Shown here: one piece after another, positions 7,746-34,800 of the stretch | Layout of the letters: every line of letters starts with the position of its first letter | Position numbering within the stretch: the stretch's first letter is position 1 | Translations under genes and position numbers: made by a program | Notes under the pieces: model-generated | Database searches by the model: none | What the model was told of the DNA's origin: nothing | What the model saw: only the letters and a program-made list of their open reading frames with translations | Origin: Scyliorhinus canicula | Taxonomy: Eukaryota | Length of the DNA stretch: 64,000 nucleotides | Reading direction: 5' to 3' | NCBI RefSeq assembly: GCF_902713615.1 | Contig: NC_052154.1 | Coordinates: 159,380,754-159,444,753, forward strand

Positions 7746-7996
7746 TATTCGGCTGACAGATGTATAAATACCTGTATTGTTAATATAGCTTAGGCACAGA
7801 TATCTTACAAAAGCTCAGGATAAATGTACGAGTGGTTCGGAAAACCAAGACCAAAAATTATGACATTTCATTCACCAATGGAAAACATAGCGATTGTCGT
7901 ATACATGATGCAAGGTCAAAACAAGGTGGTTGTTTCCATCTCTAAAATCAAAATCACAGCGCACTGCTTCCTGATCCAGAAAATTGCCACATCAAC

Positions 7997-8295
7997 TCAA
8001 CTTAATTTCAGTCTGAAGTATCTGCAAATTGGATCCATCTCAGTGATAACATCAACTTGGAACTGACAATTGTGATCTTCTTGCTTTGGTGTATAAGTTA
8101 ATGCTGTGGTGAAACCCACACCAGTTTTAAACGGTGTGTTTGCAATGCAGCTCATATCTTCAAAAGGGTAAACGTCTCTGTACCAAGTGATGTGGGCATC
8201 ATCCACGGTGGTTCCTTTAACAGTGCAGGAAATTGTCACGGGCTGCCCGGCTCGAGGACATTTTGTTTGGCAAGTTATCTGTGACACCTCTTCAT
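7997..8295 (-). CDS. Exon 12, terminal post-TM Ig C1-like domain 7 ending in TGA
   Basis: Acceptor ttttattccaacag|; VTISCTVKG...ITWY...[10 protein letters not shown]...QFQVDV...LKLS-stop; F-strand Cys replaced; no TM. Confidence 0.85.
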
Positions 8296-11200
8296 CTGTT
8301 GGAATAAAATTTAGAATAAAACTCTTAAAAAACATGACAGAAATATAGATTTAATTGTACGAAGAAAAAACACAAGGAAAGTTGGATTCTTCTAGCAGTA
8401 GAACTCCTACACTAGGGGCCTTTTCATTTTAATCTCAACTGCTTCTGACTTCCGAAAAGAAATGAGCCATTTTACCAAGAGTCACCATAGGTCCTGCATA
8501 AATTTCAAGCCTTGATGTCCGGGAATAAAAGCAAAACAACAGGCGGAGAACATCCTTCTGTCTCATTAAGAGACATTTTTTGATTTAGTCACGTGCAGAA
8601 TTAGAATGATAGAATTTACAGTGCAGAAGGAGGCCATTCGGCCCATCGAGTCTGCACCGGCTCTTGGAAAGAGCACCCTACCCAAGGTTCACACCTCCAC
8701 CCTATCCCCATAACCCAGTCACCCCACCCAACACTAAGGGTAATTTTGGACACTAAGGGCAATTTATCATGGCCAATCCACCTAACCTGCACATCTTTGT
8801 GACTGTGGGAGGAAACCGGAGCACCCGGAGGAAACCCACGCACACACGGGGAGGATGTGCAGACTCCGCACAGACAGTGACCCAAGCCGGAATCGAACCT
8901 GGGACCCTGGAGCTGTGAAGCGATTATGCTATCCACAATGCTACCGTGCTGAGGTACAGTGAAAAGTATTGTTCTACGTACAGTTCATACAGATCATTCC
9001 ATTCATGAAAAAAACATAGGACATAGATAAATACGTAGACACAGGCAGCAGGTGAAGCAGACGGAGTGTAGTACTACTCCGTAGAGAAGATGTGTGAAGA
9101 GATCAGTTCAGTTCAGAAGAGGGTCATTCAGGCGTCTGGTAAAAGCGGGGAAGAAGCTGCTTTTGAATCTGTTAGTGCGTGTTCTCAGACTTTTATATCT
9201 CCTGGCCGATGGAAGAAGTTGGAAGAGTGAATAACCCGGTTGGGAGGGGTCTTTGATTGTGCTGCCCGCTTCCCCAAAGCAGCAGGAGGTGTAGACAGAG
9301 TCAATGAATGGGAGGTAGTTCTGCGTGATGGACTGGGCTATGTTCATGACTCTGTAGTTTCCTACGGCCTTGGACCGAGCAGTTGCCTTACCAGGCTGTG
9401 ATGCTTTCTATGGTGCATTTGTAAGAGTCAATGTGGACATGCTGAAATTCCTTAGTTTTCTGAGAAAGTATAGGCACTGTTGTACTTTCTTGGTCGTAGC
9501 GATGGCGTGGGTCAACCAGGATAGATTGTTGGTGATAATTATACCCAGGAATTTGAAGCTGTCAACCTTCTCCACCTTCGCACCATTGATGCAGACAGCG
9601 AAGTATGATACTTCGCTTCCTGAAGTCAATGACCAGCTCCTTAGTTATGCTGACATTGAGGGAGAGATTGTTGTTGTTACACCACGCCACTAGGCTCTTT
9701 ATCTCCCTCTCGTACTCTGACTTATCGTTGTTCGAGATCCAACCCACTACAGTCATGTCATTAGCAAACGTGTAGATGGAGTTGGATCCACATTTTGCCA
9801 CACAGTCGTGTGTGTATAAGTATAGGGGCTAAGAACGCAGCTTTGCGGATCATTGGTATTAAAGACTATCGTGGAGGAGGTGTTAGATAGAGAAAAATAC
9901 AGCACAGAACAGGCCCTTCGGCCCACGATGTTGTGCCAAACTTTTGTCCGAGGTTAATCATAGAATTTTGGACAATTTTTCATGGCCAATCCACCCAACC
10001 TGCACATCTTTGGACTGTGGGAGGAAACCGGAGTACCCGGAGGAAACCCACGCAGTCACGGGGAGGATGTGCAGACTCCACACAGACAGTGACCCAAGTC
10101 GAAATCGAACTTGGGACCCTGGAGCTGTGAAGCAATTGTGCTATCCACAATGCTACCGTGCTGCCCTTAAGAAGTTAACCGACACTCCGTTATTCTACCC
10201 TAATCCATGTACCTATCCAATAGCCGCTTCAAGGTGCCTAACGTTTCCGACTCAACTACTTCCACAGGCAGTGCATTCCATGCCCCCACTACTCTCTGGG
10301 TAAAGAACCCACCTTTGACATCCCCTCTATATCTTCCACCATTTATCTTAAATTTATGTCCCCTTGTAATGGTGTGTTCCACCCGGGGAAAAAGTCTCTG
10401 ACTGTCTATTCTATCTGTTCCCCATATCATCTTATAAACCTCTATCAAGTCGCCCCTCATCCTTCTCCGTTCTAATGAGAAAAGGCCTAGCACCCTCAAC
10501 CTTTCCTCGTATGACCTACTCTCCATTCCAGGCAACATCCTGGTAAATCTCCTTTGCACCTTTTCCAAAGCTTCCACATCCTTCCTAAAATGAGGCGACC
10601 AGAACTGCACACAGTACTCCAAATGTGGCCTGACCAAGGTTTTGTACAGCTGCATCATCACCTCACGGCTCTTAAATTCAATCCCTCTGCTAATGAACGC
10701 TAGCACACCATAGGCCTTCTTCACAGCTCTATCCACTTGAGTGGCAACTTTCAAAGATCTATGAACATAGACCCCAAGATCTCTCTGCTCCTCCACATTG
10801 TCAAGAACCCTACCGTTAACCCTGTATTCTGCATTCCTATTTGTCCTTCCAAAATGGACAACCTCACACTTGTCAGGGTTAAACTCCATCTGCCACTTCT
10901 CAGCCCAGCTCTGCATTCTATCTATGTCTCTTTGAAGCCGACAACAGCCCTCCTCACTATCCACTACTCCACCAATCTTCGTATCATCTGCAAATTTACT
11001 GACCCACCCTTCAACTCCCTCATCCAAGTCGTTAATGAAAATCACAAACAGCAGAGGACCCAGAACTGATCCCTGCGGTACGCCACTGATAACTGGGCTC
11101 CAGGCTGAATATTTGCCATCCACCACCACTCTCTGTCTTCTATCGGTTAGCCAGTTTGTTATCCAACTGGCCAAATTTCCGACTATCTCATGGCTCCTTA

Positions 11201-14200
11201 CTTTCTGCACAAGCCTACAATGGGGAACCTTATCAAATGCCTTACTAAAATTCATGTACACTACATCCACTGCTTTACCTTCATCCACATGCTTGGTCAC
11301 CTCCTCAAAGAAGTCAATAAGACTTGTAAGGCAAGACCTACCCCTCACAAATCCTTGCTGACTATCCCTAATCAAGCAGTACCTTTCCAGATGCTCAGAA
11401 ATCCTATCCCTCAGTACCCTTTCCATTACTTTGCCTACCACCGAAGTAAGACTAACTGGCCTGTAATTCCCAGGGTTATCCCTATTCCCTTTTTTGAACA
11501 GGGGCACGACATTCGCCACTCTCCAACCCTCTGGTACCACCCCTGTTGACAGCGAGGACGAAAAGATCATTGCCAACGGCTCTGCAATTTCATTTCTTGC
11601 TTCCCATAGAATCCTTGGATTTATCCCGTCAGGCCCGGGGGACTTGTCTATCCTCAAGTTTTTCAAAACGCGCAACACATCTTCCTTCCTGACAAGTATC
11701 TCCTCCAGCTTATCAGTCTGTTTCACACTGTCCTCTCCATCAATATGGCCCCTCTCGCTTGTAAATACTGAAGAAAAATACTTGTTCAAGACTTCTCCTA
11801 TCTCTTCAGACACAATACACAATGTCCCGCTACTGTCCTTGATCAGACCTACCCTCGCTCTAGTCATTCTCATATTTCTCACATATGTGTAAAAGGCCTT
11901 GGGGTTTTCCTTGATCCTACCTGCCAAAGATTTTTCATGCCCTCTCTTAGCTCTCCTAATCCCTTTCTTCAGTTCCCTCCTGGCTATCTTGTATCCCTCC
12001 AGCGCCTTGTCTGAACCTTGTTTCTTCAGCCTTATATAAGTCTCCTTCTTCCTCTTAACAAGACATTCAACCTCTCTTGTCAACCATGGTTCCCTCACTC
12101 GACCATCTCTTCCCTGCCTGACAGGGACATACATATCAAAGACACGCAGTACCTGTTCCTTGAACAAGTTCCACATTTCACTTGTGTCCTTCCCTGACAG
12201 CCTATGTTCCCAACTTCTGCACTTCAATTCTTGTCTGACAGCATTGTATTTACCCTTCCCCCAATTATAAACCTTGCCCTGTTGCACGCACCTATCCCTC
12301 TCCATAACTAAAGTGAAAGTCACAGAATTGTGGTCACTACCTCCAAAATGCTCCCCCACTAACAAATCTATCACCTGCCCTGGTTCATTACCAAGTACTA
12401 AATCCAATATGGCCTCCCCTCTGGTCGGACATACTGTGTTAGAAAAGCTTCCTGGACACACTGCACAAACACTACCCCATCCAAACTATTTGATCTAAAG
12501 AGTTTCCACTCAATGTTTGGGAAGTTGAAGTCACCCATGACTACTACCCTGTGACTTCTGCACCTTTCCAAAATCTGTTTCCCAATCTGTTCCTCCACAT
12601 CTCTGCTGCTATTGGGGGACCTATAGAAAACTCCCAGCAATGTGACTGCTCCTTTCCTATTTCTGACTTCAACCCATATTACCTCAGTAGGCAGGTCCTC
12701 CTCGAACTGCCTTTCTGCAGCTGTTATACTATCTCTAATTAACAATGCCACCCCTCCCCCCCACCCCCCACCTCTTTTACCATCATCCCTAATCTTGTTG
12801 AAACATCTATAACCAGGGACCTCCAACAACCATTTCTGCCCCTCTTCTATCCAAGTTTCCGTGATGGCCACCACATCGTAGTCCCAAGTACCGATCCATG
12901 CCTTAAGTTCACCCACCTTATTCCTGATGCTTCTTGCATTAAAGTATACACACTTCAACCCATCTCCTTGCCTACAAGTACTCTCCTTTGTCAGTGTTAC
13001 TTCCCCACTGCATCACTACGTGCTTTGGCGTCCTGAATATCGGCTTCCTTAGTTGCCGGACTACAGATCCAGTTCCCATTCCCCTGCCAAATTAGTTTAA
13101 ACCCTCCCGAAGAGTACTCGAAAACCTCCCTCCCAGGATATTGGTGCCCCTCTGGTTCAGATGCAACCCGTCCTGCTTGTACAGGTCCCACCTTCCCCAG
13201 AATGCGCTCCAATTATCCAAATACCTGAAGCCCTCCCTCCTACACCATTCCTGCAGCCACGTGTTCAACTGCACTCTCTCCCTATTCCTAGCCTCGCTAT
13301 CACGTGGCACCGGCAACAAACCAGAGATGACAACTCTGTCTGTCCTGGCCTTTAACTTCCAGCCTACCTCCTTAAACTTGTTTATTACCTCCACACCCCT
13401 TTTCCTACCTATGTCGTTGGTACCAATGTGCACCACGACTTCTGGCTGCTCAACCTCCCCCTTCAGGAAACTGAAGACACGATCCAAGACATCCCTGGCC
13501 CTGGCACCCGGGAGGCAACATACCTTTCGGGAGTCTCGCTCGCGACCACAGAATCTCCTATCTATTCCCCTAACCATTGAATCTCCTATTACTATTGTTG
13601 TTGCTTATCCTTACAGATTGTGGTCTATGGATCAGGAAGTCGAGGATTCAGTTGCAGAGGGAGGAGCAAAGTCCAAGGTTTTGGAGTTTTGTTAAGACGT
13701 TGGCTGGCATTATGGTGTTGAAGGCAGAACTATCATCACTGAATATGAAGTTGACAGATCAATGGAGATGGTCAGAGAAGATAAGTAGAAAGAAGAATAT
13801 TCAAGAGTGAGGTACAAGAAGGAGTTCTGTTCTTCAAACTGGGAACATTGATTACGAGATTGAAGTGCTATACCCAAATACTGGATACATAGAAAAGCCA
13901 AACTTACAATTTATTAATTTCTGGGCAAAAATTATGGGCTACATTAAAATGGGCATGCTTCCAAATCAGAGATATTGACTAAATTTGAAACAATTGTGGG
14001 TATTGCATATTCTGGGAACCAACAAAGGGAAAGCCACAGGAGATAGGTGGGGCAATTAGCATAAAACCAACTGTTAAGCAGTTACCCCAGGCTACTAAAC
14101 ACTTAAAAATTTCAGCAGGTCAGGTAAGATACAAGAAGCCAGTCAGTAATGCACTGTCTACTACCAGGCTTGATCAAATGAAGGCCGCGAGCTGCAGGCC

Positions 14201-17200
14201 CTTTTTTGCGGACCCGAAAGCCACTGTTCAAAAACTGCTAGCCAAAAACCGCTAGGCCAGGCCGCTACGATCCAATGCTTATAAGTGAAATTCATGATTA
14301 TGCAAGGGGTGACTCCTCCAATCATGTCCCATTCCTGTGTTTGCTGCTGATAAATGAACCTATCAGCAGCAAATGAGGAAGAGCAATAGTGGGGGAGCAA
14401 CAAACACCAGCAGTGGCGAGTATGCGGAGGACTGCCAGGCACAGGGAAACTAAAAGTGCAGGAGTAGATGGACCTGGGTGTACGTGTACATAGATCATTG
14501 AAGTTGGCAGTACGGGTGAATAGAGAAGTTAAAACGCATATAATAGTGGGCTTTATTAATAGGGGCATAGAGTACCAGAGCAAGGAGGCTATGATCAATG
14601 TATACAGGACACGGGTTAGACTTCAACTGAAACATTGGGCACGATTTAACCACTGCATTGTGCCTGCTGTGGATCTGGGCGCCCCGATTAAAAAGCGGGA
14701 AAGGCCAAAATCGAGATTTGCGTGCTATCTAATCAGCCCGCTCCCGATGGCAAATTCCGGATCACATCAAAATATGGTGAGCATATCATTAACCATAATT
14801 TGCATTCATTTCCATCTCATTCGCGAGACTACAGTTGAATGCAACGGCCTCCTGGGAATTAGCTGGCTCCTCAGCAAGAAATCATGTGGGCATTGTTCAG
14901 TACTCCTTTTTAAAAACATAGAACATAGAACGATACAGCGCAGTACAGGCCCTTCGGCCCTCGATGTTGCACCGACATGGAAAAAAACTAAAGGCCATCT
15001 AACCTACACTATGCCCTTATCATCCATATGCTTATCCAATAAATTTTTAAATGCCCTCAATGTTGGCGAGTTCACTACTGTTGCAGGTAGGGCATTCCAC
15101 GGCCTCACCACTCTTTGCGTAAAAAACCCACCTCTGACCTCTGTCCTATATCTATTACCCCTCAATTTAAGGCTATGTCCCCTCGTGCTAGCCACCTCCA
15201 TCCGCGGGAGAAGGCTCTCGCTGTCCACCCTATCTAACCCTCTGATCATTTTGTATGCCTCTATTAAGTCACCTCTTAACCTTCCTCTCTCTAACGAAAA
15301 CAACCTCAAGTCCATCAGCCTTTCCTCATAAGATTTTCCCTCCATACCAGGCAACATCCTGGTAAATCTCCTCTGCACCCGTTCCAAAGCTTCCACGTCC
15401 TTCCTATAATGAGGCGACCAGAACTGTACGCAATACTCCAAATGCAGCCGTACTAGAGTTTTGTACAACTTGAACATGACCTCATGGCTCCGGAACTCAA
15501 TCCCTCTACCAATAAAGGCCAACACACCATAGGCCTTCTTCACAACCCTATCAACCTGGGTGGCAACTTTCAGGGATCTATGTACATGGACACCGAGATC
15601 CCTCTGCTCATCCACACTACCAAGAATTTTACCATTAGCCAAATATTCCGCATTCCTGTTATTCTTTCCAAAGTGAATCACCTCACACTTCTCCACATTA
15701 AACTCCATTTGCCACCTCTCAGCCCAGCTCTGCAGCTTATCTATGTCCCTCTGTAACCTGCAACATCCTTCCGCACTGTCTACAACTCCACCGACTTTAG
15801 TGTCGTCTGCAAATTTACTCACCCATCCTTCTGCGCCCTCCTCTAGGTCATTTATAAAAATGACAAACAGCAACGGCCCCAGAACAGATCCTTGTGGTAC
15901 GCCACTCGTAATTGAACTCCATTCTGAACATTTCCCATCAACTACCACTCTCTGTCTTCTTTCAACTAGCCAATTTCTGATCCACATCTCTAAATCACCC
16001 TCAATCCCCAGCCTCCGTATTTTCTGCAATAGCCGACCGTGGGGAACCTTATCAAACGCTTTACTGAAATCCATATACACCACATCAACTGCTCTACCCT
16101 CGTCTACCTGTTCAGTCACCTTCTCAAAGAACTCGATAAGGTTTGTGAGGCATGACCTACCCTTCACAAAACCATGCTGACTATCCCTAATCATATTATT
16201 CCTATCTAGATGATTATAAATCGTATCTTTTATAATCCTCTCCAAGACCTTACCCACCACAGACGTTAGGCTCACCGGCCTATAGTTACCGGGGTTATCT
16301 CTACTCCCCTTCTTGAACAAAGGGACCACATTTGCTATCCTCCAGTCCTCTGGCACTATTCCTGTAGCCAATGATGACCTAAAAATCAAAGCCAAAGGCT
16401 CAGCAATCTCTTCCCTGGCTTCCCAGAGAATCCTAGGATAAATCCCATCCGGCCCCGGGGACTTATCTATTTTCACCTTGTCCAGAATTGCCAACACTTC
16501 TTCCCTACGCACTTCAATGCCATCTATTCTAATAGCCTGTGTCTCAGCATTCTCCTCCACAATATTATCTTTTTCTTGAGTGAATACTGACGAAAAGTAT
16601 TCATTTAGTATCTCGCTTATCTCCTCAGCCTCCACACACAACTTCCCACCACTGTCCTTGACTGGCCCTACTCTTACCCTAGTCATTCTTTTATTCCTGA
16701 CACACCTATAGAAAGCTTTTGGGTTTTCCTTGATCCTACCTGCCAAAGACTTCTCATGTCCCCTCCTTACTCGTCTCAGCTCTCTCTTTAGATCCTTCCT
16801 CGCTTCCTTGTAACTATTAAGCGCCCCAACTGAAACTTCATGCCTCATCTTCACATAGGCCTCCTTCTTCCTCTTAACAAGAGATTCCACTTCTTTGGTA
16901 AACCACGGTTCCCTCGCTCAACCCCTTCCTCCCTGCCTGACTGGTACGTACTTATCAAGAACATGCAATAGCTGTTCCTTGAACAAGCTCCACATATCCA
17001 GTGTGCCCAACCCTTGCAGCCTACTTCTCCAACCAACACATCCTAAGTCATGTCTAATGGCATCATAATTGCCCTTCCCACAGCTATAACTCTTGCCCTG
17101 CGGGGTATACTTATCCCTTTCCATCACTAACGTAAAGGTCACCGAATTGTGGTCACTGTTTCCAAAGTGCTCACCTACCTCCAGATCTAACACCTGGCCT

Positions 17201-20200
17201 GGTTCATTACCCAAAACCAAATCCAATGTGGCCTCGCCTCTTGTTGGCCTGTCAACATATTGTGTCAGAAAACCCTCCTGCACACATTGTACAAAGAACG
17301 ACCCATCTAATGTACTCAAACTATATATTTTCCAGTCAATATTTGGAAAGTTAAAGTCTCCCATAACAACTACCCTGTTACTTTCGCTCTTTTCCAGAAT
17401 CATCTTCGCCATCCTTTCCTCTACATCCCTAGAACTATTAGGTGGCCTATAGAAAACTCCCAACAGGGTGACCTCTCCTTTCCTGTTTCTAACCTCAGCC
17501 CATACTACCTCAGAAGAAGAGTCCCCATCTAGCATCCTTTCCGCCACCATAATACTGTCCTTGACTAGCAGCGCCACACCTCCCCCTCTTTTGCCCCCTT
17601 CTCTGAGCTTACTAAAACACCTAAACCCCGGAACCTGCAACAACCATTCCTGTCCCTGCTCTATCCATGTCTCTGAAATGGCCACAACGTCGAAGTCCCA
17701 GGTACCAACCCATGCTGCCAGTTCCCCTACCTTATTTCGTATACTCCTGGCATTGAAGTAGACACACTTCAAACCACCTACCTGAACACTGGCACCCTCC
17801 TGCGAAGTCAAATCTGTGCTCCTGACCTCTATACTCTCAATCTCCCGTACCCCAAAACTACAATCCAGGTTCCCATGCCCCTGCTGAATTAGTTTAAACC
17901 CCCCCAAAGAGCACTAACAAATCTCCCCCCCCCAGGATATTGGTGCCCCTCAGGTTCAGATGTAGACCATCCTGAAGCTGCTGCATGGGCTGCTGAGGGT
18001 AATGAAGGAGGTGAGTAGCCATTTCTATTTTCCGGCATGCATCTAAAGACCCTGGAGCTGTACCTGTGCCAGTGGGGGGGAGGGGGGGGGCTTTTCATCT
18101 GTTAGGCCTTTAAATATTGTGAAGACCCATAACAGGGGAAACACCAGGTGCTGCCTATCTGTCAAACTAAACATCTTTAAACTCCGTGTCAATAAGGCGG
18201 TAATGTCGGAAAATGGGATGCTGCTGTGATCACTTCATTCCTTCTTTATTTTAGGAGGATCAGAGTGGTATCTCTACCAAACATGAAAGCAGACCTAAAA
18301 AAAATGTCCAGGACATTCTGTATAATAACCTGAAATGTCATACTGATGCCACTATGGATTACAACATGCACAAAACAAGAACTTCTCAAAATGAGCACTT
18401 TACCTTCATCAGGTGCTTTGTTTTCATTAGTTCCATCTTTATCGTTACCATCTGAACAGAGAAACAACTTAATTAAATACATTGGAAGCGTTTATTTAAT
18501 TTGACCAAAGTTAGTGTATTAAGTAACTCAGCCAATTGTATTGAAACAAACTGAAGTCACCAAAAATAAACTATTTCTAGCAGTAAAATAAAGTTCCAAT
18601 GCCGGATCATGTGATGCGGGTGAGGGAATAGCAGCTTTTCCGCGGGCTCTAGTGCCACTCGCTTTATAATGTCATTTATCTTGATTGCCCGGCACAAATT
18701 TGCCTAATCTGTGAATTAATAGTTGATGTTATGACCCTCATAGACCTCTGGATTAGTATTGGTGAGAATATGCCGACAAACATGACAAAATCCGGCAGTA
18801 AAAGAGAGCATTCAGATTTAACGGGACTTTGCAGAACTGGCCTCGGCTAATTCATTTGTGGCCAGTGACTTCAAGTGTCATCTTAACGCATGATAAAAAT
18901 CTCCCTGTCACCTCCCATTCCACCCTCTACCCGAGCACTAGCTTTGGATGTGTGGAGGACATCCATGGGATAGTGATTTTCCTTTTACTCAGCTCATTAG
19001 TTTCACACTAGAGTTGACCATCTTTTAGTGCCTTGGGCGATCCTATATTCGGTCTCTTGTTCTATAGGCAGTATTGTCATCACCAACCATGCTCCCATTT
19101 TCCTGGAATTTTGCGATTGGAGATCTGTTTCACGGGGGAAAAGGGCCACAAACAAGCAATTTGTGAAGGAAGTTAACGCAGCACGGTTGGCTGTCTCCTT
19201 AATGACACATCAGGCTGAGAGAAGCTTAACATTTGCAACTCAGAAACTGTAAGAGTCTGGGAATAAACCGAGAAAATACTTGGCCTACTTGACTAAGAAG
19301 TAGGCAGACTCCAGGGCTATCCTCTCTGTATGTTGTTGGGGGGGGGGGGGGAGGGGGTGAAGTTAATGAAAATGAAGGTGATCAAAGCGATTTTGGGGGA
19401 TTTCAATGCTGAATTATATAAATCTGATCAGTCTGGTGATGTGATGGCAGATATGGTATGTTTTGTCTCTTCCCTTGCTCTCCTTGCGGCTTCGGAGGAT
19501 CAGCGCTTGGCCCTTAATGCTCTCATTTTTAAAGACGAGATGGCTGCAGCTATTAAGGAACTTTAACCAGGCAAAGCCCCGGGGCCAGATGGTTTTGGGT
19601 GTGAGTTTACAGGGAGTTTAAGGATCTTTTGATGAAACCATTGGTGGCTCTGTAATTGTCTGTATTGTCTCTGTAATTTTGAAGATAGGTAAAGACCCGG
19701 AGGAATGTGCCTCTTACAGGCCAATCTCTCTGTTGAATGTTGATTTGAAATTGTTATCTAATGCACTGGTGAGAAAGTTGGAGAGTATCCGTCCGACAAT
19801 TATTCAGGAGGACCAGAGTGGGTTTATTAAGGGCAGGTTCTCCAGTAACCATGTAATGAGATTGCCGGACATGATTCAGGCTTTCCAGAAGTGGGCTCTG
19901 GATGCACTGGTGATCTCCTTGGATGGGAAGAAAGTCTTTAATCGGGTTGAGTAATTACATACAATGCGTATGGGCCTATGTTAAGATTCAATCCTATTGA
20001 TCTGGTGTAGTCAGAGAGTTGAAGAAAATCTTTGACAAAACCTTGGAGTTTAACCTTTTGTTCCTAGTTTTGGGTCTTTCAGATGGGAGAATTACTGATG
20101 TTAACTACTGACGTGACTGAATAAAGGCTGTACAATATATCGTGACTTTTGCAGCTTGTAAGATTATCCGATGCTCCTGGAGTAGTGACAAATATCGTTC

Positions 20201-23200
20201 AATTGAAAATGGGGATAAATTAGTTATGGATTGTATTTCTATGGAACCTCTGACATCTGTGATCTGTTCAATATCTCATGCATTCCATAGAGTATTGGGG
20301 GATTTGTTTTTTGTCACATGTACCGAGGTACAGTGAAAAGTATTTTTCTGCGAGCAACTCAACAGATCATTAAGTACATGGGAAGAAAAGGGAATAAAAG
20401 AAAATACATAATAGAGCAACACAAGGTATACAATGTAACTACATAAGCACCGGCATCGGATGAAGCATACAGGGTGCAGTGTTAATAAGGTCAGTCCATA
20501 AGAGGGTCATTTAGGAGTCTGGTGACACTGGGGAAGAAGCTGTTTTTGAGTCTGTTCGTGCGTGTTCTCAGACTTCTGTATCTCCTGCCCGATGGAAGAA
20601 GTTGAAAGAGTGAGTAAGTCGGGTGGGAGAGATCTTTGATTATGCTGCCCACTTTCCCCAGGCAGCGGGAGGTGTAGAGGAGTCAATGGATGGGAGGCAG
20701 GTTCATGTGATGGACTGGGCAGTGTTCACGACTCTCTGAAGTTTCTTGCGGTCCTGGGTCGAGCAGTTGCCATACCAGGCTGTGATGCAGCCCGATAGGA
20801 TGCTTTCTATGGTGCATCTGTAAAAGTTGGTAAGGGTTAATATGGACATGCTGAAATTCCTTAGTTTCCTGAGGAAATATAGGTGCTTTTGTGCTTTCTT
20901 GGTGGTAACGTCGACGTGGGTGGACCAGGACAGATTTTTGGAGATGTGCATCCCTAAGAATTTGAAACTGCTAACCATCTCCACCTTGGCCCCGTTGATG
21001 CTGACAGGTGTGTGTACAGTACTTTGCTTCTTGAAGTCAATGACCAGCGCTTTAGTTTTGCTGGCATTGTGGGAGAGATTGTTGTCATTACACCACTCCA
21101 CTAGGTTCTCTATCTCCTTCCTGTATTCTGACTCGTCGTTATTCGAGATCCGGCCCATTATGGTTGTATCATCAGCAAACGTGTAGATGGAGTTGGAACC
21201 AAATTTTGCCATGCAGTCGTGTGTTTACAGGGAGTAGAGTAGGGGGCTAAGTACGCAGCCTTGCGGGGCCCCGGTATTGAGGACTATTGTGGAGGAGGTG
21301 TTGTTGTTCATTCTTACTGATTGTGGCCTGTTGGTCAGAAAATCGAGGATCCAGTTGCAGAGTGGGGAGCCAAGTCCCAGGTTTTTGGAGCTTTGATATG
21401 AGCTTGGCTGGGATTATGGTGTTGAAGGCGGAGCTGTAGTCAATAAATAGGAGTCGGATGTAGGAGTCCTTGTTTTCGAGATGCTCCAGGGATGAGTGTA
21501 GGGCCAGGGAAATGGCGTCTGATGTGGACCGGTTGCAACGGTATGCGAATTGCAGTGGATCAAGGCGTTCTGGGAGTATGGAGGTGATGCGCTTCATGAT
21601 CAATCTCTCAAAGCACTTCATTACGATTGAAGTCAGGGCCACCGTACGGTAGTCATTGAGGCACATTGCCTGGTTCTTCTTTGGCACCGGTATGATGGTG
21701 GTCTTCTTGAAACAGGTGGGGACCTCAGAGTGGAGTAGGGACAGGTTAAAGATGTCCGTGAACACCTCTGGCAGCTGGTCCGCGCAGGCTCTGAGTGCAC
21801 GACCAGGGGTCCCGTCCGGTTCCGTCGCCTTCTGAGGGTTCACTTTCAGGAAGGCCGATCTGACTGGAAGCGGTGATGGTGGGTATGGATGAATTATGAG
21901 CTGCTGGGGCACTCGACAGCAGATTGTTGGTTACCTTCTCGAACCAAGTATAGAATGCATTGAGTTCATCGGGGAGGGGTGCGCTGCTGCCAGAGATACC
22001 GCTCGGGCTTTGCTTTGTAGCCCGTTATGCTGTTTAGTCCTTGCCACAACTGCCGCGAGTCTGTCTGTGACTCTAGCTTGGTTTGATATTCTCTCTTGGC
22101 ATCTCGGATGGATTTGCGGAGGTCGTACCTGGATTTCTTGTCTAGGTCAGGGTCGTCTGCCTCGAACGCCTCAGACCTGTCCTTCAGTAGGGAGTCAATC
22201 TCGCAATTGAGCCATGGTTTCCGGTTGGGGAATGTACGTACTGCTTTCTTTGGCACGCAGTCGTCCACACAGGGACCCCATAGACTCCACCCTGTCCGAC
22301 TTGCTCCTGTTGGACTTTCCATGAGCCATATTGTAAGTCTTGATCTCGCAATACATGAAGATGTGCAGTTTGAATGGTTGTTATTCTTTGTACTTTTATG
22401 GCCCTAATACTTCTTCCCCCCTTAATCTGTTATTAACCTGCTATTGGATTGATCCGGTATCAAAACTGGAGGCACTAGTTCCTTAAGTATGCTGTTTTAA
22501 ATTTAGCCTATCTTGTTTGTTTCTATATTTGCAATAATTTTAGTTCTGTACTGTACCTGTTTTGCATTGTTAATTACTTTCTTTCTAATCAATGGTGATA
22601 TTTGTGAAAAATCCAATAAAAATATTTTCAGTATCAAATAATCAAATGAAAATGCTTAGAGTTCAACAAAACCATCAATATTACAACTATAACAAATGAA
22701 ATGAAATGCTTTATTCTGAATCTGACTCCAATAAAACAACACACCTTGAAGGAGCAATTTGAGATTTTTCTCTTGAATTTTCTTGGTTGCTGCATGAAGC
22801 ACCTCGCATCTGAATAAACTCCCATGATCATCCTCAGCTGCAATAAATTCTATGCTCGCAATTGATGAAAAGAGACTATCATCAGCAATCACAGGTGAAG
22901 GACGGTTAATTACCCCTAGAAAAGGTTTCTCATTTTTAAACCACTTTACTTGGACGGGAGCAGGAGCATAGCTTGTCAATGAGACACTCAATATTATAGG
23001 CTGGGAAACATCAGGGAACGCTGGACCAACTTTAATAGCAGACAAGGTAGGAGAAAGAGCTGAAAAACAAATAAAAGGTTTATGATTAATCTTTAACTTA
23101 CAAATAAGGGGCTTTTCAAAGTAACTTCATTGAAGCCTACTTGTGACAATAAGCAATTTTCATTTCAAAAAGAACAAGTGTTTTTCCAATTTGGATTACT

Positions 23201-24633
23201 ATTTTTTTAAATTTTAGAGTACCAATTCTTTTTTTTTCTAATTAAGGGGCAATTTAGCATGGCATTCCCAGAATCTGGCACATCATAATTGAAGTTTCTT
23301 TTGTTTTTCTGCCTCCGTAGATAGTTCAGGCAGTGTCCTATTGGGCCCCCCCTCCACCTACTCTCTGCCTCCCCACCACCCGCCTTTCGCCTCTCTCCCC
23401 ACCACCCCCTTTCCTTTCCCTTCTGTAGGTACAGAGGTGAGGGTATCTGATCTTTCCAGCACAAAGTTTAGTGTTTGTACCATTTGTTTATTTTGTAGAA
23501 ATGTGTTTTGAACTGTTCCCTGTACATTGGTACTGAGGGGAGGGGTACCCTGTTTCTCCAACACAAAATTAGTGTTTGTACCTTTTGGCCCTGTATACAT
23601 TTTTTATTGTTTTAATAAAAAGATATGGCCAATTCACCAACCCTGCACATCTTTTTGGGTTGTGGGGGTGAGACCCACAGAGACACGGGGAGAATGTACA
23701 AACTCCACATGGGCAGTGACCCGGGGCCAGGGTCGAACCCAGGTCCTCAGCGCCGTGAGGCAGCAGTGCCACCGTGCTGTCCCAATTTATAATTATTTTT
23801 AATTAAAAAATAATAATAATACCACAAGTAGGCTTATGTTACACTACAATGAAGTTACTGTGAAAATCCCCAATACTCTGGCGCTTGTTCCGGTCCACTG
23901 AAGGAGAATTCAGAATTTCCAATTCCCCTAACAAGCACGTCTTTTGGGACTTGTGGGATGAAACCGGAGCATCCGGACGAAACCCACGCACACACGGGGA
24001 GAACATGCAAACTCCGCACAGACAGTGACCCAAGCCGGGAATCGAACCTGGGACCCTGATGCTGTGAAGCCACAGTGCAAACCATTGTGCTACCATGACG
24101 CCGTACACAATATACACAAATTCATCCAAGTTAATATCTCAATTTATGGAAGTTAAGATCTCATGAACTTTCTGAAAGGTTACCATCAGAATTATTCTAA
24201 TACTTTCTGCAGATGCACAGCTTACATAGTTATATAAAATATTCTGAAAACAGCATTAATCTTGTGAAGATGGTGGTGGGGTTTTGGTGTACCACTTTAC
24301 AGCAGCATGTCATAATAGACATCCACCGGTGTCCCAAACAACAAAGGTCACTGAATTAACGCTCCTCAGGCAGGAAGTAGTACTGCACAAAAGAAAAAAA
24401 AATCTATCCAACTCCTACTTGAAATATCCGTACTAAAAGTTTAGTATTTTTAAAAACCTGAAGAACTGATGACTTCAGGTAAGAAAAGGTTCCGGACGTT
24501 TCTGAGATTTAGCTTCTATAAACGGAATTACTTTTATAATTTTATAGAGTGAATATAACTACCTTAATTCAAATATCCTTCCTTTAAGTAGCTTCAATTG
24601 AAGATTTCCTTCTCCGACTTATCAAATTCTTAG

Positions 24634-24665
<32 letters not shown>

Positions 24666-25803
24666 ACCACCACACACCCACACAATCTCTAGTATCTAGT
24701 TGGATTCTGTTAGATTATTTGTGTGCGACTTCGTAAATGCATTCACTTGATCATAAACATTTAAGTGTGAAGAGGAACTTTTCAAATTGGAGGAGAAAAG
24801 GATCAGGATAAAACCTACCTGGACATGTTAAAAATGTAGTTTTTGTAATTGGCACTTTTAATTGAATGTGATTCACGTGGAAGGAAAATTCTTCATCAAA
24901 ATTTTCTGCAGTTGTTTTTATTTGCAAATGGGAAGTCAACCGAAAACATCCATTTTCCTCCCTCACGGGTCCTTTAACTGTCATGCCACTGACTACCTGC
25001 TTTCCATTCTTTCGCCAAAATGTTTCAATAGCTTGTGGGTAAAAGTTAGAGACGTTGCAGATCAAAGTAAGATCTGTACCATACATTGAGTCTGGTGGGT
25101 CAAATTTGATATCTTCAACAGATGGAATTCCTGTAAAGATTGCACAAAACCAGAGTTGATTACTGTATAAAATAGCCATTATGTTGGAGTATCAAAAGGA
25201 AATTCAAAACATGTCTTTTCCCCCCAAATGTTGATGTTTATACAAGGACAGTCACCATTTTTCCCCCAAATGTGGATGTTTATACAAGGACAGTCACCAA
25301 ATTTACCATTCTGCAACTTAGGCCTTTTTCAAAGATTATGACAACATCAAGAAAACCTTCTTACTTCACAGAAGATTTCTGCTGCTGATTTGATAATCAC
25401 AGCTATGTTGGAATAGCGCAATTTAGGGCCAATGCTGCCAACAAAAGGAGGTCATATGCACAGAAGGAATGTAAGCAATATAGCACTATTTCTCAGGGCA
25501 CTCCAAATGTTGTCATAACCAAAAAAGCAATGAAATGAAAAGCGCTTATTGTCACAAGTAGGCTTCAAATGAAGTTACTGTGAAAAGCCCCTGGTCGCCA
25601 CATTCCGGCACCTGTTCAGGGAGGCTGGTACGGGAATTGAACCGAGCTCCTGGCCTGCCTTGGTCTGCTTTAAAAGCCAGCGATTTAGCCCAGTGTGCTA
25701 AACCAGCCCCTAATGCCAGCATTGTGTTGGAGGCAGCTGTACTCAGCACCGGTCATCCTGAGAATCAGGGGAGAACAAGTAAGGTTAAAAGTAAGGTTAA
25801 GGT

Positions 25804-25835
<32 letters not shown>

Positions 25836-28800
25836 TGTTGGGTTACGGGTATAGGGTGGATACGTGGGTTTGAGTAGGGTGATCATTGCTCGGCACAACA
25901 TCGAGGGCCGAAGGGCCTGTTCTGTGCTGTACTGTTCTATGTTCTATGTCTAACACATCCCAGGGGATGCACCCAGTCTGAAGTCTGTGAGGCTGGGGGG
26001 GAAAGGGCTATTAAGAGACCACTTCAGGACCTTAATAGGGACAGGTGCTGGCTTCCGTCTGCCTACAGTAAAATTGCATGCTAGTTTATGCTCCCCCTCA
26101 TTCCTCAGAATCTGCGGGGGGGGGGGGTAAATTCTGGCCTGTAGATTTGACGGTCTTACAGCTCATGTATAGCTCAGCTTTATTTATTGCAAGTGTTTTG
26201 CACTGCAAAACTGATTGTGAAGGAATGTAGTTATATTAGTGTAACATTTATCAAACCAAGTTTGATCATCAACAATTATTGCTATGCCATCGGTTTAGTC
26301 CAGTGTTGCAAATATATGACTTTTTGATTTTTGGAATGAAAGTCTGAACTGTAGAAAATGGTATAAATCCACCTAAAGCATGCTTGGGAGTTTATTATAC
26401 TAAAGATTTGAGGTTAATAGCTTGAAAGGTAAGATCATAAAACAGGAGGTGCGCTTACTTAGTTAAAGAACTGGAAAAAAGGGTCTAGAGGTCATGGATA
26501 CAGTGTGCGCCATACTTTTCAGGGGACGGAGCATCACGAAAGTGGCACCGCCTCCGATTTTGGCGTCATCGGGGATTCTCCGCCCCGTCGCCGAACACAA
26601 GTTCGGCATCGGGGAACGGAGAATCCAGCCCCTGATGTCTGCAATCCTTGCAGTTAGGAGTAGTTGCAAGAAATGTTTTTGTTTTGGGAATTCAAGCTGA
26701 ATTAGTTTTAAAGCATTGCGTGAACCCCGAAAGGCTGTATAACCCGCTTTGACAAAGGGTTATCTGTACTCGAAACGTTAGTTCTTTTATCTCCCTGCAG
26801 ATGTTGCCAGACCTTCTGAGATTTTCCAGCATTTCCTCTTTGGTTTCAGATTCCAGCATCCGCAGTAATTTGCTTTTATTAAGCTGTATAACCCATTTAC
26901 TTAATCAGATCAAAGAATAAACTGTAAATAAGAGATAGTCAACTAAAGATTGGTTTGGGAAAACCCAGAGCATGCTACATTGTTATCGAGATGGGTGGAA
27001 CTTAGAAGGTTCTCTGATTTACCTGGCTGTTTTCCGCGAGTTAGCGGAGGTTTGGAGCTCACCGAGAGGAAATAGCCAAAATGAAGACAGTAAAATAGTC
27101 CTGCGCTGTAAGCAGCATAAAAAGAAAATTTTCATAATTCATCATGTGAAAGGCAGATGCGGATAAATCTCAGTTTGAATTTTGAGAGGGACAGAAACTG
27201 GAAGATTGTTGATTTTGAAACTAGTGGGAGAATCTACAGTGGTCTCTATAGTCTTTCAGCAAATAAAGCATTCAAGCAGATTAGCTTCGAAGTACAGACT
27301 GGACCATCCACAGTCCAGAGATAAAATAAAAAGTTTCTCTCTGAGAATTGTTGGAGCTGAGGGGAATTCTCCAGCGGACTGTGGCACACTAATGGGTGTC
27401 CCGACAGAAGCAAATAACTATTAAGATTATTGTGTCTTACAGTAGAATTCTTGGGGGAAATAAGTAGTAAACCACAGTGCATAGAATGTGTTGATAATTA
27501 CATGTTCTTTGTTTAATTTGTTCTAGGTACAATAAAAAATTTGTTTTTTAAAATAGATTTAGAGAACCCAATTATTTGTTTCTAATTAAGGGGCAATTTA
27601 GTCTGGCTAATCCACCTACCTTACACATCTTTGGGTTGAGTGTGCGAGACCCACGCAGACACGGGGAGAATGTGCAAACTCCACACGGACAGTGTCCCGG
27701 GGCCCGGATCGAAGCCGGTCGTCGGCACGTGAGGCAGCAGTGCTAACCACTGCACATTGTGCCCCCCTCAATAAAAAAAACTTAAAGTGAAATTTTGTGA
27801 TGGAGTTCTATTGGTTAAAATGTGCTCAGATTTCTCTATCAATGTCCCCAATGTGATTGTAACGCCTGTTATATTAACCTGCCTGACTAACAACCTCTAT
27901 TAAAACATGTCAATTTAAAATATATCTGTCCATTTCCAAATAATCTATTCAACATTCTTGAAGAGGTACTATGAAGTTCTTATTAGAATTTGACTTACCC
28001 ATTATTTTCAGAAAATGACTGGACGAGACAGGTTTGTTTGAAGTTTCAGAGTGAAGGATTTGCATTTTGAACTCTTTTCCATGGTCCAAATAAGTTGGAA
28101 TGAACGTCCTTTTCGACCATCGAGAGTACAAACCAGCACTATTCAACTGAATATCATCAGTTTCAACTCCATCATTAGTTTTCTCAAACCCTTTGAACCA
28201 GAATATTTGACTGTCTTTTGGAAAGAAGTCGAATGCTTTGCAGGAAAGTGTTACAGGTTTTCCCACTTCCGGGTGAGCTGGATCTGCTATAACTTCTGTT
28301 ACCTTTGGTGCTGACACTGCATGGATACAAAATTATCAGCGTTAATGGGATTGCATAACTGAATGAATGCCGCAATTTTTTTTAAAAGCACCTTGATAAA
28401 TTGTCAAACATTGATTTTATGATCAAATATTATTTTCCTGTAGCTCTGGAAATTCTCGTCCAAGATTAATGGACCTTTACATGGTCCATGTCCTGCCCGC
28501 GGCAATCTTGCGGCGGGCATGGCCAAAGAATCCAGCTCAATGAATTAAACATACAATAGAAAGTTGGGTTGCTCTGAACCCGCCACAAATATTAGGGTAT
28601 ATCTGAATTAAGACATGACACCTGTAATGGAGCTATCTTTAGTTTAACGTGGATGAGTCAAAAGCTCAATAATGTATTGATTACTGCCAATTTATACTTC
28701 CAACACACATTAACAGAACAATTATTTTGTCTCTTTTTGTGTTCTTCCTCTGTGACATTAAATTTATATTTCCATCTCATTCATGGCACAGTTAATTTCA

Positions 28801-31800: not shown

Positions 31801-34800
31801 ACGCAAGGAAAATTTGTAATTTCTTGAAAGATCTGTGGAATCTGTAATTACATAGAATTACATAGAATTTACAGTGCAGAAGGAGGCCATTCGGCCCATC
31901 GAGTGCACCGGCTCCTGGAAAGAGCACCCTACCCAAGGTTAACACCTCCACCCTTTCCCCATAACCCAGTAACCCCACCCAACACTAAGGGCAATTTTGG
32001 ACACTAAGGGCAATTTATCACGGCTCATCCACCTAACCTGCACATCTTTGGACTGTGGGAGGAAACCGGAGCACCCGGAGGAAACCCACGCACACACGGG
32101 GAGGATGTGCAGACTCCGCACAGACAGTGACCCAAGCCAGAATCGAACCTGGGACCCTGGAGCTGTGAAGCGATTGTGCTATCCACAATGCTACTGTGCT
32201 GCCCAAAATTGTTTTCAAGAGCGTGAAGAGTCTGTAACAATTGTAAAAGGATTCACTGTAATTTCTTTGGATAATAATAAATACAGCTCCAAGTGACCTG
32301 GGTGCAGTATAAATAAGGAGGAAGTTAAGCAAGAAGTTGTGTGACTGGCAGTTGGGTATATAAGAGAGCTGCAAGCAGACAAGTTGGCGGGTGAAAGCGA
32401 TTGGCACATGGGTGCAGACATAATGAGAAAGAAGACCTGTACAGGAAGAGAAACACAGTGATTTCTCGTGCAGTGAAGAAGAAAATCACTCTCAGGAAAA
32501 GAACTGTTTTTTCCTGTTTGGCAGAAAAGAAGTCAGGAGCTATTCTGAGGTACTGTTCAAACTGGCTAAAAAAAAAGTCTAAAACCTGGAGAGCTGTGTG
32601 AATAGCTTGGAGATGCTTAAGGACTGGGTATTTTCCCAGAAGTGGTCAAACTGTGAAGTGTTATCATTTGGTCAGTTGAAAGGGAACTCTGGAACGCTAC
32701 ACCATCAGGTCTGTCATGATCCGAGGGGCAGAGCGTCCATAGAAATATGTTCTGGTGATGATAATCATACCCATGGAAACATGAAGGTAAAGACTGTTGT
32801 CAGATAGGACTCCGGACCTATCCCACGTGAATAAAGAACATGTCGTGGAATCGCGTAGCTATGCAGTGCCACTTGTGTGCAGGGAATAAAATGGATGCTT
32901 ATGATTGTGTAAGATCTAAAGTGAAATTTACCTCTTTATTTGATACATCATTTACCTGTTCATTAATGTGTAACTTGTGTTGACTCTGATTCATGTTGGA
33001 GAAAAAGCTACAAAAAGTATAGTCTTGGTAATTTTCCCATTTGGTTTTCATTCAGTGAACTTGGTTATTTTAGTTTGTGGTTTCCCCATGGGGGTTGTAA
33101 GAATGGTTGCTTACCCAGTTGATCGAGCTCCCAGTCAACTTCCAATGTCTGTAATAGGGTTTCGTGTTCAACTTGGCATCTAAATTTCTTCCCAACATCG
33201 GCTCTGGTAGGTATACACTTAACACTACTTGTCAAATAATACAGTCCATCATTTCCCAGAGTTGACTCGCTTTCTTCAGATTCTTCTATCATTTCTTCAT
33301 TATTTTTAAGCCATGTAACTCTGATGTTATTGGGGTAAAAAGAATGTATTCGACAGTATAAAGTCATGGGCTCTCCCGCAACCGGTTTTTCTGCACCATA
33401 TGTTATCTTGTCCAGTTTTGGAGTGGCTGAATAAGAAACAGGAAAAACAAACTTACTATAGATTTTTAACAGAGGAGGGTTAGAAATATTGGAGCCTAGA
33501 TTCTATTCTATGTGCGGCAAATGGCCAGAACATTTAATCCATTATGTTTTGAAAATTCAGAATGGGGAAAAGTACAAGATAAAAAGTTACACAATTACCG
33601 CAATTAGAGAAACATGCTCGGGACATTTCACTCATTGAAAATATTACATACCTGTAATGATCAGAGTTATTGATTTCCTCGCCACACTTCCAGTGCATTC
33701 ATGCTGTACCTCACAGATATACTCTGTGCCCTGATCTTGCAGTATATCTGGCATAATAACTAGTACGCTGGTGATGCCACATGATTTATCTTCATACTCA
33801 GCTTCACTTATGTGATGGTTACACTTCCGCTTCGTCCCATTGTCAGTAGGAACAACTGTTCTGTTGTTCTGATCAAAACCAACGATTTCTTTCAACTCAT
33901 CATTCTTCCCCTTTTGCTGCCATCTGATCTTTAATGGTCTTGGTTTAAATCCATTGATCGAACAAGTCAAGGCCACAAGTTCATTATGCAGAATGAGAAA
34001 CGGCACCACAATGTTTGAAACTTTTGGTGGGACTTTGGGAACAAGAAATAAAACCAAGATATCATCTATTTAAACCAAAACAATTTTCAGCATTAATAAG
34101 AGCGAGAAAATATTATTTTGCAGGCCGAATTCTCCATAATTTAGAGACTACAGATGGCAGAACTACCTTACTATTATTAACCACATGTCACTTCATATAA
34201 ATATGCAAGTTAACAAACTAAATCCAGAATTGATTCAAAGAGCATAAATAATAATTTACCTCCTTTAACATCCAGTTTTACAACTTTCAGAGCAGGCTGT
34301 GCAATAGCTTTATGGTGAACATGAAAAGTTAATTCAGCCTCATTATCTCTGAATAAATCAGGATATATTTTGACATCACACCGTACTCTGAAAGTTCCAT
34401 CTTTGTTAGTACAAATTTCTGGTATCAAAGGCCGAAAGGATGGGTCTTCTTGACAGCCATTTACAAGAAGGCATACTTCATGTGTGTTTGATTTGGACAC
34501 CAAACGTGTTTTGTTCTCCGGGCTACACCATTCAAAAATTGTTCTTTCGATTTGATCTCTCCTCTTCAAGATTAGATCAATTTTAATTTCCCACGGTCTA
34601 AATCTATTAACTTTGTAACTGATGGTGGTTTCTTCTAAATGGCGAAAGATGTTAGGCATGTTGCATTCGATAATTTCCGGAGCAACTAATAAAACAAAAT
34701 AACACATGTCAATTTAAACACTCATTTGCTTACTCTTTTTATTATCTTGCTGAGCTACAGGCTCACATGATACTTTGTATCTACACTGGACAGGGGTTTC

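Follow-up and report, generated by a model that had tools for sequence, protein, structure and literature searches.

A minus-strand gene of the catshark Scyliorhinus canicula probably encodes a type I membrane protein of the B7-H6 lineage, with a V and a C1 domain outside the cell, one transmembrane (TM) helix and a cytosolic tail of about 800 residues that carries seven C1-derived immunoglobulin (Ig) domains. The canonical Cys pair of strands B and F is missing from most of these post-TM domains in the catshark, and most of 27 related proteins show the gaps at corresponding positions. These relatives come from chimaera, sharks, rays, sturgeon, bichir, coelacanth, lungfish, amphibians, turtles and lizards; the set includes some paralogues, and its species are non-independent samples. 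In four of the domains the losses go back beyond the last common jawed-vertebrate ancestor, to more than 400 million years ago.

The gene was identified in a window of 64,000 nucleotides (the whole stretch of DNA analysed) and comprises 12 coding exons, all of phase 1-1, for a product of 1093 amino acids; the encoded order is leader, V, C1, TM, six Ig exons, an acidic linker and a final Ig exon. As the original prediction held, frames and splice sites are intact, the exons being flanked by AG and GT throughout with the sole exception of a GC donor 3' of the C1 exon. All coordinates given here refer to the minus strand. The leader (exon 1, 62021..62111) is predicted from a hydrophobic open reading frame, a phase-1 donor (CAG/GTAAAC) and an in-frame join; it begins with MAAA, as in the Cetorhinus orthologue. 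Exon 2 (46162..46494; Pfam V-set/I-set) encodes the V-type ectodomain and exon 3 (43495..43827; Pfam C1-set, E 1.8e-11) the C1-set ectodomain, and exon 4 (37955..38068) encodes the TM helix with a KIK stop-transfer motif. The interval 7997-34685 runs exactly from the start of exon 5 to the stop codon. It holds a divergent C1-like domain with a long disordered loop (exon 5, 34260..34685), five C1-set domains (exon 6, 33652..34032; exon 7, 33115..33426, C1-set E 4.5e-18; exon 8, 27999..28316; exon 9, 24819..25130, C1-set E 1.3e-13; exon 10, 22745..23059) and the last Ig domain with the stop codon (exon 12, 7997..8295). Exon 11 (18404..18451), a 16-residue acidic linker, was located by tblastn with the S. 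torazame protein and has AG/GT flanks and phase 1-1; AlphaFold models the corresponding part of the orthologue as disordered.

The joints 37955 to 34685, 34260 to 34032 and 33652 to 33426 are seen in RNA contigs from three runs of three studies (1679, 2822 and 3916 nt long). The TM exon is spliced straight to exons 5, 6 and 7 in these contigs, which therefore represent one mRNA. Their length 3' of exon 7 (1519-1571 nt) fits exons 8-12 plus a UTR of ~250 nt, and these RNA-like runs also represent exon 12 with its flank (window positions 7700-8300), at 0.88-0.96.

Structure prediction indicates with confidence that the post-TM domains are C1-type seven-stranded beta-sandwiches. In the AlphaFold model of the basking-shark orthologue every one of them is strand-rich, with pLDDT values of 85-92, and a model of the catshark exon-5 domain (pLDDT 84.5) is matched by Foldseek to the C1 domains of MHC class II alpha-2 and beta-2 and of beta-2-microglobulin. 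The C1 exon and exons 6-10 score 32.5-65.8 bits against the Pfam C1-set profile (PF07654, cut-off 21), exon 12 falls under the cut-off at 16.8 bits and exon 5 has no Pfam match. I-set scores are far under those of the C1-set in every post-TM exon, and the Pfam search found no B30.2/SPRY domain in any of them. The solved relatives of the array are Ig, MHC, beta-2-microglobulin, SIRP and UrIg2 only.

Each of the Cys substitutions named in the original prediction is present in the sequence, residue for residue. In exon 5 the B-strand Cys is replaced by Tyr (TTISYKV) and the F-strand Cys by Phe (AELTFHVHH), and the strand-C Trp is Leu; the F-strand Cys is replaced by Met in exon 8 (KEFKMQILH), by Phe in exon 9 (EEFSFHVNH) and by Val in exon 12 (CQFQVDV), and the B-strand Cys by Val in exon 10 (IILSVSL). 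The canonical pair is thus incomplete in five of the seven post-TM domains, while Cys-Trp-Cys is intact in V, C1 and exons 6 and 7. These residues occupy the expected places: the exon-8 Met aligns in HMMER with the F-strand Cys of solved CL, CH1 and CH3 domains, the modelled exon-5 domain has Y23 inside strand 19-28 and F120 inside strand 117-124, and in the multi-species alignment the columns of the catshark losses carry Cys in other species. In this gene alone, 5/7 against 0/2 falls short of significance (Fisher p ~0.17), and it is only because of the cross-species Cys counts that the contrast goes beyond chance.

Across the 27 relatives, V and C1, the clearly extracellular domains of these proteins, retain Cys-Trp-Cys without a single loss. 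The F-strand Cys of exon 8 is found in none of the 27 proteins and its B-strand partner in 26, whereas exon 10 shows the reverse, with the B-strand Cys in 2/26 and the F-strand Cys in 26/27. The F-strand Cys of exon 5 occurs in 2/27, its B-strand Cys varies among lineages, and the strand-C Trp position is Leu, Phe or Val; in V, C1 and exons 6-12 this Trp is kept in essentially all sequences. Exon 9 has the F-strand Cys in 6/25 (five frogs and one newt). Both Cys are present in exon 12 of 12/23 sequences, and its loss is lineage-specific; exons 6 and 7 keep both in 22/23 and 25/27, respectively. Residues replacing the lost Cys are hydrophobic in almost all cases, and the orphan partner Cys persists in 23-26 sequences. 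Four of the five losses (exons 5, 8, 9 and 10) are found again at matching positions across the 27-protein set; they are ancestral events shared by descent and did not arise independently in this shark.

The placement of the tail in the cytosol seems likely to us from features of the protein sequences: a signal peptide and single TM with a positive-inside signal, scattered free Cys and the lack of widely conserved glycosylation sites. A search with exon 5 gave 54 matches, and in almost all of them a single TM, at about residue 230-330, immediately precedes the exon-5-like domain. The 12 residues preceding the TM have a net charge of -0.67 and the 12 following it one of +2.0, the positive-inside signal is found in 27/27 proteins, and the motif K-x-F-K-K-V-P-P-K is conserved. 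In well-aligned columns, non-conserved Cys occur at 0.18 per 100 residues in the ectodomain versus 1.49 post-TM, an approximately 8-fold difference, and the columns that contain them make up 2.7% and 19.8%, respectively. The excess extends to each post-TM domain (0.97-1.76 per 100 residues, exons 6 and 7 included) and has the same direction in 18/18 proteins in an 18-sequence version of the set. The contrast in N-glycosylation sequons is weak: 45 were observed versus 33.8 in shuffled sequences for the ectodomain, with one site in 10/18, and 85 versus 85.4 for the post-TM part, where no sequon is widely conserved (at most five species per site among the 18 sequences). Disulfides generally do not form in the reducing cytosol, and the original prediction took the Cys losses as a sign of cytosolic location. 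The splicing of the TM exon to exon 5, the charge asymmetry and the scattered Cys support this reading, in which the location itself is one that we infer. The cytosolic tail is well supported but unproven, because isoforms skipping the TM exon are annotated in relatives.

The annotations of Hemitrygon (X6), Bombina (X2) and a Heterodontus paralogue (X3) include isoforms of this kind, in which precisely the TM exon is missing, and the S. torazame gene model lacks this exon, too. As all exons are of phase 1-1, skipping keeps the frame, and there may therefore be a secreted V-C1-(Ig)7 product whose array enters the oxidizing pathway. The array might then work outside the cytosol, the loss of disulfides being tolerated there as it is in a few extracellular Ig domains. 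The pairs retained in exons 6 and 7 of nearly all species, although not required in a purely reducing setting, are in line with this, as is the extracellular nature of all solved relatives of the array domains. We nevertheless consider it unlikely, since the TM exon is included in every transcript assembled from the three catshark runs and in most annotated isoforms of every species, among them the elephant-shark entry V9K7L7, and the TM with its basic flank is conserved in all 27 proteins. Moreover, each tail has about 12-20 scattered, non-conserved Cys, which would be disadvantageous in the secretory pathway, and hardly any occur in the ectodomain; the absence of a widely conserved post-TM sequon points the same way.

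It is considerably less probable that the Cys losses say nothing about the compartment and reflect inherited history, with stability provided by tighter hydrophobic packing or domain-domain contacts. The single ancestral origin of four of the five losses and the insufficiency of the one-gene contrast speak for such a view, but it leaves unexplained the excess of scattered Cys in every post-TM domain, exons 6 and 7 included, as well as the constancy of the V and C1 Cys in 27 sequences against the repeated losses in exons 5 and 12, with residues that differ among lineages. That the post-TM exons are decaying remnants, or a second gene joined by read-through, and yield no maintained protein is hardly credible. 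The missing Pfam match of exon 5 and the weak one of exon 12 could be cited in its favour, as could three polymorphisms in the RNA contigs that are all non-synonymous; these are, however, conservative (V/I, I/M, I/L), and the transcripts are spliced in three studies. The orthologous exons correspond one-to-one, more than 400 million years of evolution have left the frames undisrupted in the 27 proteins, which span chimaera to lizards, and identity to Callorhinchus (elephant shark) is 36-54% for exons 5-12, equal to that of the ectodomain (V 47%, C1 39%). Together with the confident fold predictions and intact exons, this conservation settles the earlier claim that the domains are folded and maintained rather than decaying.

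We therefore favour the type I protein with a cytosolic array. Its signal peptide would direct the V and C1 ectodomain outward, up to a single TM helix, and the seven tail domains, descended from C1-set domains, would lie in the cytosol. Four of them would have dropped one or both canonical Cys before the jawed-vertebrate ancestor lived, a hydrophobic residue filling the gap and the partner Cys surviving as a core residue; since no disulfide forms under reducing conditions, the fold would no longer depend on one. As to function, our best guess, by analogy, is that the ectodomain may be the ligand of an NKp30-type receptor. By comparison with the butyrophilin B30.2 domain, the Ig rod may serve in the cytosol as a scaffold for interactions or as a sensor, linking ligand display or clustering to the cell's state. 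A wider reading is tentative and, taken as a whole, rather doubtful: C1-set domains would have been active in the cytosol ever since jawed vertebrates arose, forming the original tail of B7-H6, an intracellular binding or sensing array that controlled NK-cell-ligand display and was lost in mammals, with possible absence from birds and teleosts as well.

Human B7-H6 (NCR3LG1), the ligand of NKp30 on NK cells, shares a V and C1 ectodomain followed by one TM; its cytoplasmic tail is short and has signalling motifs and no known Ig domains, in contrast to the catshark tail of about 800 residues with seven. The putative assignment to the B7-H6/NCR3LG1 lineage comes from best-match similarity and automatic names: human B7-H6 is the top solved match of exon 2 (E 8e-12), exon 3 (E 1.7e-13) and the elephant-shark orthologue ectodomain (2e-25), and NCBI automatically names Bombina, Rhinophrynus, Zootoca and Lacerta members NCR3LG1. 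Butyrophilins such as BTN3A1 share the plan proposed here, in which a V-C ectodomain of B7 type and one TM are followed by a large folded module in the cytosol; their B30.2 domain senses an intracellular ligand and signals inside-out. The analogy is functional only, as the catshark module is a string of C1-set-derived Ig domains with no B30.2/SPRY.

Titin, obscurin and myosin-binding protein C likewise have Ig beta-sandwiches in the reducing cytosol, and intracellular Ig domains of muscle, e.g. in titin, often do without the canonical pair. These proteins are I-set, soluble and cytoskeletal, whereas the catshark protein matches the C1-set best, has a signal peptide and is membrane-anchored. 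Integrin beta-4 is likewise a type I protein whose long cytoplasmic tail contains beta-sandwiches of a usually extracellular type; its cytoplasmic FN3 domains are a cytoskeletal scaffold and have no sequence relationship to the catshark C1 domains. Ig heavy chains and shark UrIg2 have tandem C1-set domains on phase-1 exons, as here, and the solved structures that match the array best include UrIg2 and IgA/IgG heavy chains. Their C1 domains keep the intradomain disulfide. They also lie before the TM or are secreted, unlike the catshark domains, which follow the TM and mostly lack the disulfide. In UrIg2, the TM is preceded by nine C1 domains (PMC12227049). The family to which the catshark gene belongs is large, extends from chimaeras to lizards and is unnamed in public annotation, and our literature search found no paper describing it.

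To our knowledge, C1-set domains, as in antibodies, T-cell receptors and MHC, are not otherwise known from the cytosol. If the tail is cytosolic, this would be the first known case of such domains in a reducing compartment, and the architecture would be the ancestral state of a ligand important in human NK-cell biology. The family also supplies natural examples of C1 domains that are independent of the disulfide, which is relevant to intrabody design. Given the Cys pattern, the surplus of scattered Cys and the asymmetry of charge, the topology is open to direct testing by standard assays. Our findings suggest that early B7-H6 may have linked an intracellular module to an NK-cell ligand, as butyrophilins do for gamma-delta T cells.

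The catshark gene, on the minus strand of the window, was modelled as 12 exons that join into an open reading frame of 1093 amino acids encoding a leader, V, C1 and transmembrane (TM) exons, six Ig exons (5–10), an acidic linker and a last Ig exon. This model agrees with the exon numbering of the original prediction, and the interval 34685–7997 runs from the start of exon 5 to the stop codon. A predicted leader exon (exon 1, 62111–62021, minus strand) was added, and the 48-nt linker exon (exon 11, 18451–18404, minus strand) was located by means of the Scyliorhinus torazame protein; its Tyr motif is not conserved, as the YENI of S. torazame corresponds to NENK in the catshark exon. Judging from open frames and splice signals, the ten Ig or TM exons are all of phase 1-1. 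Exons are flanked by AG and GT; the one exception is the donor after the C1 exon, where a GC-AG intron is predicted from the genome sequence (ACAG/GCAAGT at 43493–43494, minus strand). Neither AATAAA nor ATTAAA is present in the 500 nt downstream of the stop codon.

Three copies of a CR1-type LINE, each with a long endonuclease/reverse-transcriptase ORF (10200–13577 and 15004–17907 on the minus strand, 47826–51210 on the plus strand), sit within introns 11 and 1. Intron 1 also contains an LTR-retrotransposon-like set of gag, protease-RT and integrase ORFs (55840–59769, minus strand), flanked by near-identical short ORFs (55576–55788 and 59903–60121) that resemble LTR ends. At the intronic positions 35610–36480 and 37176–37523 the summed depth of RNA contigs reaches tens to hundreds of thousands, with numerous chimeric joints; such abundantly transcribed repeats are of the SINE/LINE type and do not belong to the mRNA of the gene. 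Downstream of the 3′ end of the gene, positions 1–3000 are GC-rich (52–57%), strongly AT-skewed and of low complexity, and both strands have long Pro/Gly-rich ORFs.

Transcription was followed with contigs from three RNA-like runs, each of a different study, placed on positions 33000–38200 only. One long contig per run (1679, 2822 and 3916 nt) carries the joints 37955–34685, 34260–34032 and 33652–33426, the first of which links the TM exon (37955–38068) to exon 5. The 3916-nt contig continues for 1109 nt ahead of the TM exon, which fits the leader, V and C1 exons with a 5′ UTR, and for 1571 nt beyond exon 7, which fits exons 8–12 (1292 nt) with a 3′ UTR. Exon 12 and its flank (7700–8300) are covered at 0.88–0.96 in the same small RNA-like runs and the intron-rich 33000–38200 at only about 0.3; a raw-read run gave thin coverage of the latter region. 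Thus, a single mRNA carries both the TM exon and the Ig array. Two adjacent genes, initially given a modest chance, are ruled out by the RNA joints together with the conserved architecture of the family, and the same evidence makes inclusion of the TM exon the main form, although its alternative use had at the outset seemed only slightly short of an even bet. The RNA contigs differ from the assembly at three exonic positions (V483I at 33883, I336M at 34549 and I279L at 37991); all three changes are conservative and non-synonymous, and they are too few to serve as a measure of selection.

The canonical Cys of strands B and F (B-Cys and F-Cys) had been predicted to be lost in five post-TM domains, and every one of these substitutions was recovered: B-Cys to Tyr and F-Cys to Phe in exon 5 (TTISYKV, AELTFHVHH), F-Cys to Met in exon 8 (KEFKMQILH), F-Cys to Phe in exon 9 (EEFSFHVNH), B-Cys to Val in exon 10 (IILSVSL) and F-Cys to Val in exon 12 (CQFQVDV). 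The V and C1 exons and exons 6 and 7 retain the pair, as expected, and all four have Cys-Trp-Cys, the Trp being that of strand C. Pfam assigns the C1 exon and exons 6–10 to the C1-set, gives weak matches only for exon 12 and has no match for exon 5. The Met of exon 8 aligns with the F-strand Cys of solved CL, CH1 and CH3 domains (HMMER), and the Tyr and Phe of exon 5 fall in the B and F strands of an AlphaFold model. On this gene alone, five losses in seven post-TM domains against none in two ectodomain domains are not statistically significant.

The pattern was therefore followed in alignments of the catshark protein with 17 and then 26 relatives (27 sequences), in which both V and C1 have Cys-Trp-Cys in 27/27 sequences; the rows include paralogues (e.g. 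of Pristiophorus and Mustelus) and are non-independent samples. F-Cys is present in exon 5 of 2/27 sequences, in exon 8 of none of 27 and in exon 9 of 6/25 (five frogs and one newt), and B-Cys is present in exon 10 of 2/26. These counts place four of the five losses before the split between cartilaginous and bony vertebrates. Both Cys are retained in exon 6 (22/23) and exon 7 (25/27), and in 12 of 23 sequences for exon 12, where Val or Ile is common to elasmobranchs. As had been noted for the catshark, hydrophobic residues nearly always take the place of the lost Cys. The orphaned partner Cys is conserved (exon 8 B-Cys and exon 10 F-Cys, each 26/27), and the strand-C Trp is retained in exons 6–12. 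The first strand of exon 12 has an extra Cys (ITCQTK, window position about 8270, catshark residue 1003) that is present without exception (15/15 sequences), whereas this exon's canonical F-Cys is there in some sequences and missing in others.

Each catshark exon has its best match in its positional counterpart. V and C1 share 47% and 39% of their residues with the elephant shark, and exons 5–12 share 36–54%; the tail is conserved like the ectodomain in all other species compared too. The AlphaFold model of the basking-shark orthologue (27 aligned sequences) has a mean pLDDT of 81, with a beta-sandwich for every post-TM domain (pLDDT 85–92), a helix at the TM and disorder confined to the exon 5 loop and the linker. 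For exon 5 of the window the model reaches a pLDDT of 84.5, and its top-ranking Foldseek matches are MHC class II alpha-2/beta-2 and beta-2-microglobulin. The positional matches, the elephant shark identities and the confident predicted folds bear out the view that the post-TM domains are folded and maintained; their decay is excluded. Compared with the S. torazame model, identity is 67% for the V exon (46162–46494), 84% for C1 and 82–97% for the post-TM exons; the low V value could reflect either faster ectodomain evolution, as in a receptor–ligand arms race, or a paralogous model.

The further claim that the array is cytosolic is well supported as the probable reading. Net charge is −0.67 in the 12 residues before the helix and +2.0 in the 12 after it, and a conserved K-x-F-K-K-V-P-P-K motif runs straight into the first post-TM Ig domain. 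Since unpaired Cys are purged from extracellular domains and tolerated in cytosolic proteins, scattered Cys (those at non-conserved positions) offer a test that does not depend on the B/F pair. Counted over well-aligned columns, they amount to 0.18 per 100 residues in V and C1 versus 1.49 in the post-TM region (0.97–1.76 in every domain), and 2.7% of ectodomain columns versus 19.8% of post-TM columns contain them; in the smaller set of 18 sequences, 16 species lack them in the ectodomain and have 5–20 in the tail. In the ectodomain, N-glycosylation sequons exceed the shuffled expectation 1.3-fold, and one site occurs in 10 of 18 species; in the post-TM region they are at expectation (1.0 versus shuffles), and each site is confined to at most five species. 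This contrast is weakly supportive of a cytosolic tail, not decisive. However, a secreted form carrying the array is possible, because annotated isoforms or models of relatives lack exactly the TM exon (34–38 aa): P0076 (stingray, Hemitrygon X6), P0038 (toad, Bombina X2), P0057 (horn-shark paralogue, Heterodontus X3) and P0002 (S. torazame). These predict a secreted V-C1-(Ig)n protein, and the Cys pairs retained in exons 6 and 7 also count against a cytosolic array.

A phmmer search of 1.84 billion representatives gave 54 matches to exon 5, nearly all with a single hydrophobic helix at about residue 230–330, immediately ahead of the exon-5-like domain. Look-ups and a second search place the family in chimaera, many sharks and rays, sturgeon, bichirs, coelacanth, lungfish, caecilians, salamanders, frogs including Xenopus, turtles and lizards. 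Almost all members are annotated as ‘uncharacterized protein’, and a few from frogs and lizards as NCR3LG1 by NCBI. Among solved structures, human B7-H6 gives the best match to the V exon, to the C1 exon and to the ectodomain of the orthologue; those matched by the post-TM array are Ig constant domains, MHC class I alpha-3, beta-2-microglobulin, SIRP and UrIg2. In a Heterodontus francisci paralogue (P0001/P0055, 1515–1541 aa) the tail consists of eight near-identical tandem exon-5-like domains, each preceded by the acidic spacer KEIEDDSDRSLLENVPDSER. A full-text literature search, with incomplete coverage of work on B7-H6 evolution, gave no account of cytoplasmic Ig domains in B7-H6 and no mention of the LOC numbers of the orthologues; an earlier description is possible.

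The protein would be a surface ligand of the B7-H6 type whose cytosolic part is a rod of seven Ig domains that do not depend on disulfides. Its identity as an I-set muscle protein was rejected from the Pfam assignments. Butyrophilins join a B7-type ectodomain to a cytosolic B30.2 sensor; Pfam detects no B30.2 domain in the catshark protein, which is consequently not a butyrophilin. By analogy with butyrophilins, the rod may act as an intracellular scaffold or sensor; a structural role is just as conceivable if the analogy is drawn instead with integrin beta-4 and the FN3 domains of its tail.
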